Below are positions 45,493 through 51,091 of a stretch of DNA of 64,000 nucleotides, piece by piece. Position 1 is the first letter of the stretch, and every line of letters begins with the position of its first letter. Below the pieces are notes generated by a model, which was not told where the DNA came from, ran no database searches, and saw nothing but the letters and a program-made list of their open reading frames with translations. The position numbers and the translations under genes are program-made. The stretch is taken from positions 171,319 through 235,318 of IMG/VR virus record IMGVR_UViG_3300028864_000014; one strand, 5' to 3'.

Positions 45493-45843
45493 ATGAAAAA
45501 AGAAGAGTTAAGTAAATGGTTTCTAAATAAATTTAACTCATGTTATTCAGAAACTTGTGATTACCAAATATATTGGTTCTATAATGAAAGATATATTAGA
45601 ATGAATAAATTGTGTAAATTAAATAATACTAAATCTATTATTCCGTCAAAAAACGATCATAACAGTATTTGCTTATTTCATCAAGATACAGTTAATAAAT
45701 ATTTGTGGTGTGATTATTGGATAATATGGTCATTTTTAGAAAAAAATTATTCTAATGATGAAGATGATGTTGTGACTATTATACAAGAGATTTTAAAAGA
45801 TAATACAGAACTCAAAAAATATATTCCTTATCCTGATTATTAA
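45493..45843 (+). CDS. Family X paralog, array 1/13
   Basis: [39 protein letters not shown]. Confidence 0.85.
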
Positions 45844-45853
45844 ATATTATCAT

Positions 45854-46267
45854 ATGACAAAAGAAGAGTTGAGTAAATGGTTTGTAGATAAATTTAATTC
45901 ATGCTATCCAGTTAGTATAACTGGTGACGAATCTCGTTTGTTATTTTTCTATGATGAACAATTTATTAGAAAAAAAAAATTGTGCAAAATTGAAAATAAA
46001 AAACTATCTAATCATAATGTCAACGGTTTTTGTTTATTTGATTTGTATATTAGTAATAGATATTTATATTGTGATTTAGAAACAATTTGGAAATTCTTTG
46101 AGAAAAATTATAGTAATGATTATAGTAAAATACAATCACTTATAACTGAAATAATTAAAAATCATATACCAAAATTAAGTTATCATACTCCTCAATGTTC
46201 TAGAGTGAATACAGCATATCCAAAAAATTATTATCACAAATTAAAAATATATAAATCAATACTATAA
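45854..46267 (+). CDS. Family X paralog, array 2/13
   Basis: same motif set. Confidence 0.85.
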
Positions 46268-46677
46268 TGACAAAAGAAGAATTAAGTGATTTTATATTGG
46301 AGACATTAAAAAAATGCTATAAAGTTAAACATGAGGATTATCCAAGTATAATTTTTTGGATATATGATGAACAATTCATTAGAAAAATTAAATTAGGCAA
46401 AATAAATAATCAAGACATAAAAATTACAAATGAAATTAACGGAACTTGTATATTTCAACAAGATTTTAAAAAATTAAAATTTCGTTGTAATGATGATATT
46501 TGGACTTTTTTATTCAGATACTATTCCGATGATTACTATGATAATCAGAAATTCATGAAAGATATACTAAAAAATATTACTAATTTAAATATGTATTTAC
46601 CAACAATGAATTCATCAACAGCTAATATATCATTGAAAAATTACAAGAAAATAAGTTTATATTTAAATGATGTATAA
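46267..46677 (+). CDS. Family X paralog, array 3/13
   Basis: same motif set. Confidence 0.85.
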   Translation: MTKEELSDFILETLKKCYKVKHEDYPSIIFWIYDEQFIRKIKLGKINNQDIKITNEINGTCIFQQDFKKLKFRCNDDIWTFLFRYYSDDYYDNQKFMKDILKNITNLNMYLPTMNSSTANISLKNYKKISLYLNDV

Positions 46678-47065
46678 AAAAGATTTATATGATTGGTTCT
46701 GGAATAAATATAATTCCTGCTATCAAGTTAAAGTAGAATTATATCCAGATAGTGTATTCTTAGTTTATGACGAAAAATATATAAGAAAACTTAAATTGTT
46801 TAAATTAAATAATACAGAAGAGTTAATTTCAATTAATAATGTTGAAGGAACATTTTTATTTAATCAGGATAATAAATTTAGAATTTTATGGCTGAGTGAA
46901 GAATTGTGGAAGTTCTTTGAAAAAAACTATTCATATGACTACTATGATATTCAAAAACTAATAAAAAAACTACTAAAAGATCATCCAATTTTATTCGATT
47001 ATAATCCTTTACCTGGTATGATTAAAAATATATATGAAAATAGTATTATAAAATCAAGATTATAA
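46667..47065 (+). CDS. Family X paralog, array 4/13
   Basis: same motif set. Confidence 0.85.
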   Translation: MMYKKDLYDWFWNKYNSCYQVKVELYPDSVFLVYDEKYIRKLKLFKLNNTEELISINNVEGTFLFNQDNKFRILWLSEELWKFFEKNYSYDYYDIQKLIKKLLKDHPILFDYNPLPGMIKNIYENSIIKSRL

Positions 47066-47071
47066 AATTAT

Positions 47072-47578
47072 ATGAGAGAAGAAGAATTAAAAAAATGGTT
47101 CTGTGATAAGTTTAATAATTGCTATCCAACAAAACATTCTAAATATTTAGATAGTGTCTATTGGATTTATGATGAGCAGTATATTAGAAGATTAAAGTTA
47201 TGTAAAATAAATAATCAAGAAATTCCTGCACCTGATAAAATAAAAGGAGTCTGTTTATTTGAGCAAACTAAAAAATTCGAATATTTGTGGTGTGATTATG
47301 ATTATATATGGTCATTCTTTGAAAAAAATTATATTAATGACTATGATAAAATACAATTATTTATAACAAATATAATAAAAGATAGTATAGAACAGTCTTC
47401 TATAAAATATTCACCATCACAACTTAAAAAAATTAAACCTATGATGATGATATTTAAAGATGCATTTCCAATGACTGAAATTGATAATTTAAATAACCAT
47501 AGTATTAGATATGATAACTTGAGTTCAATTAATGATGTATTAGATTTAACAGATAATTCAATAAATAAATTTTTATGA
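47072..47578 (+). CDS. Family X paralog, array 5/13
   Basis: same motif set. Confidence 0.85.
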
Positions 47579-47989: not shown

Positions 47990-48397
47990 ATGAACAATAT
48001 TGAAGCATCATATATTCTATTAAATAAGTTTAATTTGTGTTATAAGGTTAAATGCGCTGATTATCCTGATAGTATATTCTGGTTCTATGATGAACAATTC
48101 ATTAGAAAACAAAAAATATGCAAATTAAATAATCAAGATGTTTTGTTGCCTAAAAAAATAAATGGATATTGCCTATTTGAACAAGATATTAAATCAATGA
48201 ATTTATTTTGTGAAGACGGACTTTGGGATATTATTGAAGAATGTTGTAATAAAAAAAATATTGACATTAGAACGATTATAAAATATTCACTTGAAAATTA
48301 TAAAATATTCAATGATTACAAATTCTACAATGAACGTGGTTCATTTAAATCTATGATTACAGATATTACAAAATTAACAATATATAGTAATGAGTAA
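47990..48397 (+). CDS. Family X paralog, array 7/13
   Basis: same motif set. Confidence 0.85.
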
Positions 48398-48842
48398 AGA
48401 AGAATTATCAGATTGGTTTTGGAATAAATTTAATTGCTGCTATCCAGTTAAATCAGATGAATTTCCTGATAGTATATTCTGGTTTTATGATGAAACATTT
48501 GTTAGAAAACAAAAAATATGTAAATTAAATAATCAAGATATTACTTTTCCTGATAAAGTTAAAGGAGTTTGTTTATTTGATCAGGACACTAGATATGAAG
48601 TATTTATGTGTGATTATGATTTAATTTGGACATATTTTAAAGATAATTATGGAGATGATTATGATTATATACAATCACTTATAAGCGATATACTTAAAGA
48701 AAATGATAATTTAAATGAATACACACCCAGATATCTTAAAATAAAAAATTATCATAATTTAACTGTATATACACCAGTTATTCAATATAAAGAAAATATT
48801 AAAAATATGCATTATAATATTAAATTGAAAATATATGAGTAA
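48390..48842 (+). CDS. Family X paralog, array 8/13
   Basis: same motif set. Confidence 0.85.
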
Positions 48843-49323
48843 AGAAGAATCATCAGAGTTTTTTTGGAATATTTTTAACTGCTGCTATCCAGTTAAATCA
48901 GATGAATTTCCTAATTGTATATTGTGGATTTATGATGAAAAATTTAATAGAAAACTTAAATTGTGCATAATAAATAATCAAGGAATATCAATACCTAAAA
49001 ATATGAATACTGGATCATTATTATTTGTACAAAATATAAACAAAAAAAATTTGTACATTAATAATAACGAAATATGGAATTTCTTTGATAATAATTTAAG
49101 AATTGAAGATAAAAATGTTAAATTAATGATATATGAAATTTTAGATAATAGAAACAATGATGATATTTTTATCTTAAATTCTTATGATATAATACAACAT
49201 CTTCCTTATGATTTAATCACTTATTTAAGTCTGCAAAAAGAACGAGAAAAACATTTTCATGTATGGACATCATATTTTTTTCTACATTTTCAACATCTAC
49301 ACAATTTAAATATATATGAGTAA
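48835..49323 (+). CDS. Family X paralog, array 9/13
   Basis: same motif set; 5' end close to copy 8. Confidence 0.85.
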
Positions 49324-49720
49324 GGACGAATTATCAACTTGGTTCTGGAAAGTTTTAAATTCCTGCTATCCACTTTACAAATCTAATAATCCTAATATTA
49401 TATCATGGTATTATAACGAGAATTTTTCAAGAAAAATTAAATTATGTAAAATAAATAATCAAAAAATTATAATAACTGACGAATTTAAAGGTGATTTTGT
49501 TTTTGAACAAAACATTAAATTCAAATCAATATATTTTAATCATGATAATATATGGAATTTTTTTAAAAATAACTATTCAACTGAAGATGTTTATATAGGT
49601 ATATTACTAAAAGAAATATTAAATAATAGTAATAAATTTAAAGGTTATAAATCATATATGACATACAATTATGATAATTTTTTACTGAAGTACAATCAAA
49701 GTTTTGAATTATATGAATAA
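49316..49720 (+). CDS. Family X paralog, array 10/13
   Basis: same motif set. Confidence 0.85.
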
Positions 49721-50183
49721 AAAAGAATTAATTAAATGGTTCTGTGATAAGTTTAACTCGTGCTATTCAGTTAAGCATGATGATTATCCAGGTGTCATAT
49801 TATGGTTTTATGATGAAACATATATTAGAAAACTTAAATTATATAAACTTAACAAGCAAGAGAACATATTACCAAATAAAGTTAAAGGAATTTGCTTATT
49901 CAGACAAGACACAAGAAAAAAAATTTTTTGGTGTAATTATAATGAAATTTGGGAATTTCTTGAAGATAATTATAAAGATGGAGATTATAATGAAATTCAA
50001 CTACTTATAAAGAATGTACTATCAAATAATATAGAATTAAAAGAATATGATCCAAAATTAACTGACATCATAAGTAGTAGAATAATATCAAATAATGAAA
50101 AATTGAGTTCATGTTATCCTGCGTCAATGAGAGTAAACTTTAATGAACTTAATGATATTGAAAAAATAAAAATAGATGAATAA
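49713..50183 (+). CDS. Family X paralog, array 11/13
   Basis: same motif set; start moved from TTG 49704 to ATG 49713. Confidence 0.85.
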
Positions 50184-50634
50184 AAATGAATTATCAAATT
50201 GGCTCATTGATAAAATGAAATCATGCTATCCAGCTCATGACTTAATTAGTCCTAATAATTTATATTATTTCTATGATGAAAGACATATTAGAAAACTTAA
50301 ATTGTGTAAAATAAATAACAACAAATATAAATATAAATTACCTAATAAAGTAAAAGGAAAATGTTTATTCACTAAAAATTATAAAGCAAATGTTTTATAT
50401 TTTAATTATGATGATACTTGGAGATTCTTTGAAAAAAATTATATTAATGATTACGGTAAAATTCAAACTCTTATTTGTAATATATTGACAAAAAATTCAA
50501 ACTTAAATTTAAAAATAAATCAAATCTCCTTTTCTTGGTTATTACCATATGCGGGTGTTGAAAAATTAACAATTTATAAATCAAATCTAATGCAACCAAT
50601 TCAGTTCAAAGATAAAATGATAAAAAATGAGTAA
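50176..50634 (+). CDS. Family X paralog, array 12/13
   Basis: same motif set. Confidence 0.85.
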
Positions 50635-51091
50635 AGAAGAATTATCAAATTGGTTGATTAGCAAAATTTTATATTGCTATCCAGTAGTAGATAAAGAATG
50701 GAATGATTACGTTTTTTATTTCTATGACGAACAATATATTAGAAAACTTAAATTGTTTAAGTTATATAATATAAAAATAACATCGCCAAATCAAGTTAAT
50801 GGAATATGCTTATTTAGTTTAAATATTAAATATAAAATTATTTACTTTCATTATGAATATGTTTGGAAATTCTTTGAAAATAATTATATAAATAATTATA
50901 TACAAATTGAAAAATTTATAACTGAAATTATAAATGATTATAAACAACTAAATAAGTATTCACCAAAAAAAAATTCACAAGGATTTAGATATCCTGAACT
51001 AATAAGAAGTAAGAAAAATTTAGAAATTAGAGAAGCTGATTGGTCATCTCTACTTCCAAGTTCATATAAAAAATTAATAGTATTGAAATAA
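50627..51091 (+). CDS. Family X paralog, array 13/13
   Basis: same motif set. Confidence 0.85.
   Translation: MSKEELSNWLISKILYCYPVVDKEWNDYVFYFYDEQYIRKLKLFKLYNIKITSPNQVNGICLFSLNIKYKIIYFHYEYVWKFFENNYINNYIQIEKFITEIINDYKQLNKYSPKKNSQGFRYPELIRSKKNLEIREADWSSLLPSSYKKLIVLK

Follow-up and report, generated by a model that had tools for sequence, protein, structure and literature searches.

The 64,000-nt stretch of viral DNA analysed here (the window; positions 171,319 to 235,318 of IMGVR_UViG_3300028864_000014) carries family X, a set of small paralogous proteins encoded in part by a 13-gene head-to-tail array. The source is treated as an uncultured jumbo phage of ~235 kb and ~23% GC from peat. With a probability of about 40%, family X represents a lineage-expanded group of small, cytoplasmic, non-structural phage proteins that act early on the host as multivalent adaptors with linear-motif tails. 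According to this model, the array would be read as an operon from a host-type promoter, translated through coupled stop and start codons and closed by a hairpin terminator. Each product would be built from three parts: an alpha/beta head, about 105 residues long and without known relatives; a basic helix (F/Y-D-x-x-x-I-R-K-x-K-L-x-K-L-N-N) that interrupts a hairpin of this head; and a disordered tail, which in the window comprises 0-3 units of 22 residues and in relatives as many as 8. The tail unit consists of a conserved 12-mer (L-x-D-x-x-K-L-x-x-Y-T-P) and 10 hypervariable residues, the decamer. These proteins may act on the infected cell as multivalent adaptors, in takeover or counter-defence. 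In that case the 12-mer would serve as a docking peptide that fits either a groove in the family's own heads, so that the proteins assemble with themselves or with one another, or a single host partner. Valency would depend on how many units a tail carries, paralogues would each differ in specificity through their diverged head surfaces and decamers, and gene and unit numbers would shift by unequal recombination at a conserved junction and at the repeats. As a kind, family X resembles the lineage-specific expansions of large phages; what sets it apart is its tail architecture and the pattern of motif sharing, of which no description was found in the literature.

A profile built from the family and run against the six-frame translation of the window recovers exactly 18 copies (E 1e-42 to 1e-61). 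The array at 45493-51091 comprises 13 open reading frames (ORFs) of 116-168 aa, all on the plus strand and separated by gaps of -11 to +10 nt, and the initial annotation had placed both these genes and five further copies, at 5942, 26153, 44839, 61491 and 62144, correctly. Every copy is a single open frame that covers the N-terminal domain in full, so none of the 18 is broken, as had been claimed. The copies are also well diverged, with pairwise N-domain identities of 28-55% (median 41%) and identities to copy 1 of 35-51%. Six columns of the 18-copy alignment are invariant (C17, Y30, R36, K39, F62 and W79 in copy 1 numbering), and the conserved strings quoted in the initial annotation are borne out by this alignment. 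One additional weak profile match, at 43978-44271 on the minus strand, is due only to a shared short motif, the basic helix.

The tail architecture is plainest in relatives of the window phage. In distant members the head ends in L-x-D/E-x-x-K-L/M-x-x-L/Y/V-T-P, and the 12-mer is then repeated up to eight times, each repeat being followed by 10 unrelated residues. Among 200 family proteins, 61 of 69 inter-motif intervals are exactly 22 residues long, a spacing found 0 times in shuffled controls. Most motif columns hold 2-4.3 bit of information versus 0.2-0.5 bit in the variable columns, and an invariant Pro directly precedes every decamer. In the DNA of relatives, nearly every family gene contains a 36-nt unit encoding LSDTTKLNVYTP that alternates with unique 30-nt segments at a spacing of exactly 66 nt; hypervariable segments of this kind lie, for example, on contigs L001 (7333-13116), L012 and L017 (9841-10537). 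Across 51 repeat variants, differences fall 150, 36 and 13 times on codon positions 3, 1 and 2, 140 codon changes are synonymous versus 40 non-synonymous, and 19 DNA variants encode an identical peptide. This mostly synonymous variation indicates that the 12-mer is selected as a peptide. The 54 unique 30-mers contain 2 stops per 540 codons in frame versus 32/486 and 53/486 in the other two frames, a depletion of about twenty-fold. Decamers are random-like in composition, with no enrichment in Cys, Ser or Thr, and share no similarity even between identical flanking repeats. Their GC content at codon positions 1-3 is 0.38, 0.33 and 0.32, that of the heads of the same genes 0.29, 0.23 and 0.18. 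Within one phage the decamers stay the same from sample to sample, and the only differences are losses of entire units. In the AlphaFold model the repeats are unstructured, with a predicted local distance difference test score (pLDDT) of 27-49 beside a head at >=94.

In the window itself the canonical 36-nt repeat is absent at up to 9 mismatches, and the GC content at third codon positions (GC3) of the tails is 0.12, at equilibrium with the genome. The 22-residue register is nevertheless plain in eight copies (45854, 46267, 47575, 47990, 49316, 49713, 50176 and 62144), as illustrated by a tail that reads LKNITNLNMYLP followed by TMNSSTANIS and then LKNYKKISLYLNDV. The majority of the proteins fall into length groups of 116, 132-137, 150-156 and 179 aa, matching the sizes predicted from 0, 1, 2 and 3 units. 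Together, register and length clusters without a canonical repeat imply that the window phage bears short, degenerate versions of the same tail architecture. The initial annotation had described the C-terminal tails simply as variable; they are indeed less constrained, but their regular modular structure had been overlooked.

The interpretation of the 12-mer as a docking peptide, and of family X as adaptors, is favoured on four grounds: no other peptide of the disordered tail is as well conserved, AlphaFold places the first 12-mer against the head, differences in 12-mer number come in whole units, and one homologue joins five heads with many interspersed 12-mers in a single chain of 760 aa. 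If this holds, the family would be a natural multivalent scaffold system. Several points weigh against it. Searches of family libraries and PADLOC, and Foldseek comparisons, did not connect family X with a takeover or anti-defence protein by either homology or fold. A pure linker role would explain neither the decamer GC3 of 0.32 versus 0.18 in the heads of the same genes nor the mutual dissimilarity of decamers that lie between alike repeats. Docking is predicted solely from AlphaFold strands placed beside the head, with a pLDDT of about 84 for motif 1 and about 67 for motif 2, and the expression timing likewise solely from promoter motifs.

The same decamers allow a more ambitious and doubtful interpretation, namely an undescribed phage hypervariable-cassette system. 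Here a folded head would carry 66-nt units that are added or lost whole, and the random-like, stop-free decamers (GC3 0.32 vs 0.13-0.18) would be produced by dedicated diversification or strong diversifying selection, yielding a peptide repertoire displayed or released during infection; in addition, IRKxKLxKLNN, the basic helix, would be a portable tag that directs about one third of this phage's small early proteins to a shared partner or location. If decamers are functional, phages would possess their own modular route to peptide repertoires. To our knowledge, a strictly selected peptide combined with fixed-length, random-like segments is otherwise found only in combinatorial peptide precursors and, as regards DNA geometry, in CRISPR (clustered regularly interspaced short palindromic repeats) arrays. 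A foreign origin of the decamers found no support, as no spacer was seen outside the arrays in the searches made, whose power was limited.

Peptide precursors provide the most interesting rival to the adaptor model. Prochlorosin ProcA, the multi-core cyanobactin PatE and MSDIN represent precursor families with many paralogues, a conserved N-terminal part and hypervariable C-terminal cassettes. Family X could similarly encode precursors resembling those of ribosomally synthesized and post-translationally modified peptides (RiPPs), in which the head acts as a leader or recognition domain and the decamer or the 12-mer is cut out, for instance after the invariant T-P, and perhaps modified. Many paralogues with a conserved N-terminal part, hypervariable C-terminal cassettes between near-identical recognition sequences (clear in relatives and metagenome members, with flanks that are conserved also as DNA, as in the known families), a Pro at the cassette border and a disordered tail all suit this proposal. 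So do the radical-SAM gene at 14749-15660 in the window and a distant member located near peptidase M16 and radical-SAM genes. However, no maturase or protease adjoins the array, whose neighbours are fibre-like genes and small ORFs, or lies consistently near other members, and the radical-SAM protein of the window is generic and encoded 30 kb away. Decamers lack the enrichment in modifiable residues, the window's own tails are degenerate, and the head, a domain of 105 residues with a confidently predicted fold, exceeds the usual size of leaders; the context would be a phage early operon. A precursor function is regarded as quite unlikely. The radical-SAM protein (plus strand; Pfam E 4e-12) has weak, generic similarity to MoaA, PqqE and SPASM maturases, and contig L039 has another radical-SAM gene close to a family member.

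The 66-nt units might instead act as nucleic acid, forming a CRISPR-like or CRISPR-mimicking array of 36-nt repeats and 30-nt spacers in gene 3' ends. The geometry in relatives is exactly that, each spacer is unique, spacer composition departs from that of the phage (GC 35%, even over the codon positions), and samples differ only by the loss of entire units, in line with the whole-unit gain and loss of CRISPR arrays. This idea was rejected because the units are translated and constrained at the peptide level, in-frame stops are depleted, no Rfam CRISPR repeat (CRISPR-DR) is matched and the repeat RNA is unstructured. Distant members, moreover, encode the peptide motif by different DNA, cas genes were not seen, and the window has no canonical repeat. 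A scan of public collections with three spacers recovered no copy outside the arrays, and all 54 spacers compared with the collected family loci gave only chance matches of 12-18 nt, a comparison of limited power, so no protospacers emerged. The residual probability of a nucleic-acid role for the units is close to negligible.

The basic helix extends well beyond family X, a point that the initial annotation had missed. Of the 118 predicted window proteins, 44 contain R-[KRN..]-x-K-[LI]-x-x-[LI], versus 0.6 expected from shuffled proteins, and the fuller form of this pattern reads F/Y-D-x-x-x-I/L-R-K-x-K-L-x-K-L/I-N. The helix is internal in the 18 family X copies, around residue 39 (range 36-40). 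It is also present in 26 other small proteins of 59-153 aa, where it begins 9-21 residues before the C-terminus; these proteins belong to several unrelated paralogue families and span 1812-20604 on the plus strand and 43975-44458 on the minus strand. When family X is compared profile to profile with a 10-member family, only the 19 helix columns align. A DNA-level cause of the shared IRKxKLxKLNN was rejected, since codon use in the helix equals the genome average, Leu is spelled by 4-5 different codons and Leu and Ile interchange; the constraint therefore acts on the peptide. Minimal family members (P0080 and P0157) have no basic helix, which identifies it as an insertion into the head hairpin.

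The helix could contact DNA or RNA, in which case family X would consist of nucleic-acid-binding regulators or nucleoid-associated proteins, acting as specific transcription or translation factors or coating DNA. In favour of this, the most conserved exposed residues (R39, K40, K42 and K45) share this one helix, the same helix recurs across the window proteins, and weak fold hints repeatedly point to primase zinc-binding and MCM N-terminal domains. Jumbo phages also provide a precedent for such expansions: Bacillus phage G carries a ~35-copy zinc ribbon, a lineage-specific small-protein expansion (PMC7824862). Both cases involve dozens of diverged small-domain paralogues in one large phage genome with a guessed function, but family X has a different, unannotated fold, no zinc site and an additional modular repeat tail. 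A zinc site built from four Cys positions was considered and rejected, as only C17 and C61 are conserved and distant members have no Cys. The fold hints lie far below significance (Foldseek E about 1, best VIA Z 4.0), head isoelectric points range from 4.3 to 9.5, distant members are entirely devoid of the basic helix, and the family library scan found no known DNA-binding motif. Nucleic-acid binding appears unlikely.

The novelty of the family is evident from several searches. Scans of Pfam, PHROGs and PADLOC with the 18 copies and 51 distant members produced scattered sub-threshold matches only; a match to DUF5101 in one protein was not reproduced in other members and was set aside. A PDB sequence-profile search yielded 0 matches at E up to 10. 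No match was found among 50,697 GenBank phages (tblastn with three members; blastn with 7 kb of flanking DNA), and a scan of 185,579 GTDB species-representative genomes with the most conserved peptide pattern found no bacterial or archaeal relative. In metagenomes, by comparison, an exhaustive profile search collected 904 representatives at 50% identity with E <=0.001, 327 of them at <=1e-10, and a word search returned 68 clusters at 90% identity. The AlphaFold model of copy 48390, based on an 80-sequence alignment, has an overall pLDDT of 83.5, with >90 for residues 1-110, and the element order helix, two strands, helix, two strands, two helices, strand. No solved structure was matched, with a best E of about 1 for Foldseek against the PDB and a best Z of 4.0 in a wide VIA search, and BFVD, AFDB clusters and the ESM Atlas returned uncharacterised viral clusters and no fold of known function. 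Recurrent weak rows for primase zinc-finger, MCM-N and XisI folds (template-modelling score 0.1-0.3 or Z <=4) were not relied on. By sequence comparison, family X is a new, unannotated, phage-specific family; as the initial annotation had stated, no known family fits, and neither sequence libraries nor fold searches linked it to a housekeeping or structural one. The aligned sequences have no evident signal peptide or membrane segment, for which reason the proteins are presumed to be cytoplasmic.

The anatomy of the array suggests how it might be expressed. A sequence matching TAYCTTTGYR, TATCTTTGTA, lies upstream of its first gene (Table 1) and fits TAnnTTTG, the -7 element of Bacteroidota sigma-A promoters. 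The extended pattern has five matches in the window versus 1.75 expected, all on the plus strand and 18-29 nt upstream of start codons; the matches precede the starts at 1564, 2966, 11206, 14174 and 45493, each belonging to the first gene of a small-gene block. Only this extended -7 element is informative, as the full -33/-7 Bacteroidota pattern is not enriched in the window (9 vs 4.7 expected) and a sigma-70 consensus scan says little in such AT-rich DNA (111 found vs 116 expected). The array interior has no intergenic room. Six junctions share the 8-nt overlap ATGARTAA, in which the C-terminal Y-E-stop of the upstream gene doubles as the Met-Ser/Asn-Lys start of the next. A bidirectional terminator-like hairpin closes the array, one of six such sites in the window versus 0.9 expected. 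Because of the closed interior, the start/stop overlaps and the hairpin, the simplest reading is that the 13-gene block would form one operon with one promoter, coupled translation and one terminator. The initial claim of a single Bacteroidota-type promoter is consistent with this arrangement, and is, like the operon itself, read from sequence. The putative host-type promoter and operon anatomy together make expression early or in mid infection most likely.

Position among large genes raises the question of whether family X could be virion-associated, or a fibre-assembly accessory that serves the surrounding tail-fibre paralogues as adaptor or chaperone. Copies do sit among 11 large fibre-like genes, and one metagenomic homologue is fused to a Laminin_G_3 fragment, a domain also encoded at 39193-39936 in the window. 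This lone fusion may, however, be an assembly or gene-calling artefact, distant members occur in replication or accessory regions rather than in structural modules, and no PHROG structural family matches. The array also runs on the strand opposite to the fibre genes and has the host-type element instead of theirs. Four fibre genes carry TATATATAGAAATAAA as their upstream element, 8 nt before the ATG; this pattern has six matches in the window at <=1 mismatch versus 1.0 expected, four of the six being the exact fibre-gene copies. The difference between the two elements fits early, non-structural expression of the array, as predicted from the promoter motifs, and a fibre-related role seems improbable. 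Variable small-gene sets are also known from the T4 internal-protein locus and the hyperplastic early regions of T-even phages, which share with family X a short conserved module and high turnover between related phages. The T4 internal proteins are products of late genes, and what they have in common is an N-terminal peptide that targets them to the capsid and is cleaved off; the conserved part of family X is a whole domain, and its promoter appears host-type.

The history of the array is one of slow change. Array neighbours average 43.5% N-domain identity versus about 41% at other distances, and a maximum-likelihood tree that includes 43 copies from relatives is star-like, with terminal branches of >1 change per site and clear orthologues elsewhere for only a few window copies. 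A syntenic relative (IMG/VR 3300030294_000062, hereafter relative C) is collinear with the window at about 77% DNA identity. Copy number, whose comparison in relatives the initial annotation had proposed, does differ at the same locus: in the interval bounded by the orthologues of copy 44839 and the fibre gene at 51125-52870, there are 5 copies in relative C versus 13 in the window, and the series of relative C begins with the orthologue of copy 2, copy 1 being absent there. Contigs from four other peat samples contain exact collinear pieces of the array, and joints that were rejected as copy-number variants since they arise where paralogues and relatives cross-map. These contigs, which cannot show rare variants, gave no copy-number variant of this genome. 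Identities of 28-55%, neighbours that are no closer and 13 versus 5 copies make the locus look like the product of long-term birth-and-death turnover, with no sign of ongoing amplification in the sequences compared.

The initial interpretation holds only in part: these observations do not support the description of the array as an accordion in the K3L/tifA sense, in which near-identical copies have been amplified recently. Poxvirus K3L and T4 tifA are viral gene accordions. In phage T6, anti-defence loci are reported to undergo SegB-driven amplification (PMC13096335). Family X shares with these systems head-to-tail copies at one viral locus and a copy number that varies between relatives, but accordions consist of recent, transient, near-identical copies of a known anti-host gene, whereas family X copies are old and individually conserved. 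The long-branch tree, the neighbours that are no closer than other pairs and the lack of copy-number variants among the contigs of the four other peat samples all argue in the same direction.

Selection was assessed from the ratio of non-synonymous to synonymous substitution rates (dN/dS, omega) between reciprocal-best orthologues of the window and relative C, at dS about 0.5-0.8. Five family X genes have values of 0.30-0.46; other genes of equal divergence range from 0.02 to 1.0. Pooled by region, omega is 0.32 for the head and 0.58 for the tail, and the copies are therefore functional, with tails that are less constrained though not neutral. The expansion might still be functionless or selfish, with duplicates persisting neutrally in a hyperplastic genome end. 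A window full of paralogue families and the strong turnover of array content between relatives would agree with that view; it is made very improbable by 18 of 18 frames intact despite 45-72% divergence, by purifying selection at a dN/dS of 0.3-0.46, and by the 904 related clusters found across environments. Large multigene families are common in big phages and almost none has a known role. The coordinates of the family X copies and of the array's control elements are collected in Table 1.

Table 1. Family X copies and putative expression signals in the window.
Feature	Position	Strand	Remarks
-7 promoter-like element TATCTTTGTA	45467..45476	+	Bacteroidota-type; 18 nt 5' of the array's first ATG, within the 201-nt upstream region
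Copy 1	45493..45843	+	116 aa; stops directly after the first 12-mer, 0 spacer units; missing in syntenic relative C
Copy 2	45854..46267	+	137 aa; 1 spacer unit; orthologue in relative C, 72% aa identity, dN/dS 0.33
Copy 3	46267..46677	+	136 aa; 1 spacer unit
Copy 4	46667..47065	+	132 aa
Copy 5	47072..47578	+	168 aa; long, degenerate tail
Copy 6	47575..47985	+	136 aa; reciprocal best hit in relative C, 57% aa identity
Copy 7	47990..48397	+	135 aa; 1 spacer unit
Copy 8	48390..48842	+	150 aa; copy used for the AlphaFold model
Copy 9	48835..49323	+	162 aa
Copy 10	49316..49720	+	134 aa; 1 spacer unit
Copy 11	49713..50183	+	156 aa from ATG 49713 (ORF list: TTG start 49704); 2 spacer units
Copy 12	50176..50634	+	152 aa
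Copy 13	50627..51091	+	154 aa; final operon gene
Terminator-like hairpin	51091..51121	.	Bidirectional; 14-bp stem, T-runs on both strands; closes the array; recurs at 52909-52939
Copy 44839	44839..45291	-	150 aa; divergent from the array over the 201-nt intergenic region; orthologue in relative C, 89% aa identity, dN/dS 0.30
Copy 5942 (dispersed)	5942..6439	+	165 aa; 3' of an HD-domain gene; orthologue in relative C, 69% aa identity, dN/dS 0.30
Copy 26153 (dispersed)	26153..26584	-	143 aa; closes a small minus-strand operon upstream of a collagen-like fibre gene
Copy 61491 (dispersed)	61491..62147	+	218 aa; tail long and rich in lysine; first of a pair; preceded by TACCTTTATAA, an element similar to the array promoter element
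Copy 62144 (dispersed)	62144..62683	+	179 aa; 3 clear 22-residue tail units and a terminal partial unit

The window is AT-rich (20-30% GC) and densely coding, and the host is probably a Bacteroidota bacterium, as suggested by the -7 promoter element and the lack of Shine-Dalgarno sequences. Identical window DNA (100%) is found in IMG/VR contigs as long as 235 kb, and relatives are found on contigs of 181-256 kb, all from peat metagenomes. Family proteins of one relative, phage A (about 235 kb), occur also on contigs of 326, 434 and 711 kb, which are probably concatemeric assemblies of a circularly permuted genome.

This genome end is a paralogue-rich region. The large neighbours of family X are collagen-like or repeat-rich fibre candidates, including 24174-26066, 40812-43469, 51125-52870 and 55407-57197. 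Together with 57297-58874 and 59548-61074, these form a group of six paralogous fibre-like genes, all on the minus strand, that combine N-terminal collagen-like Gly-X-Y runs with long arrays of 27-nt (9-residue) repeats. A second fibre-like family with 3 members lies at 28991-34495, and terminator hairpins with AAAAAACTCAGTTAA-type stems separate several fibre-like genes. Other products include Fib_succ_major, CBM5/12, Laminin_G_3, GT25 glycosyltransferase, HD and radical-SAM proteins. Proteins of 60-100 aa make up additional tandem families of paralogues, which have 10, 5, 4 and 3 members and gene overlaps of 4-17 nt and are located at 7213-10004 and 19172-20604 (+), at 8038-9311 (+), at 7442-8045 (+) with 44240-44458 (-), and at 27753-28692 (-); at least some of these small-protein blocks also sit behind a TAYCTTTG element.

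Distant family members reside in accessory islands with genes for HD, PARG-like macro-domain, methyltransferase, ankyrin and DnaJ proteins, a company that suits accessory or counter-defence islands but proves nothing. In the window, an HD-domain gene (4251-5033) lies shortly upstream of copy 5942. The same order is present in relative C and recurs in a distant 94-kb contig (loci L051 9052-10540 and L037 6698-8904); in the distant contig a PARG-like macro-domain gene precedes the HD gene. Two distant phage contigs that carry family members encode IS605-type TnpB (OrfB / Cas12f1-like) proteins (L041 15-1211; L050 5545-7067), one of them together with a Y1 transposase, and L050 also encodes a major-vault-protein shoulder domain. 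Phage A carries, in addition, neighbouring genes with 60-nt tandem repeats (20 residues, leucine-rich-repeat-like) at 3100-5200 (-) and 13700-20400 (+) of contig L001. One of these repeat genes encodes 208, 188 or 168 aa depending on the sample, differences that correspond to whole repeats.

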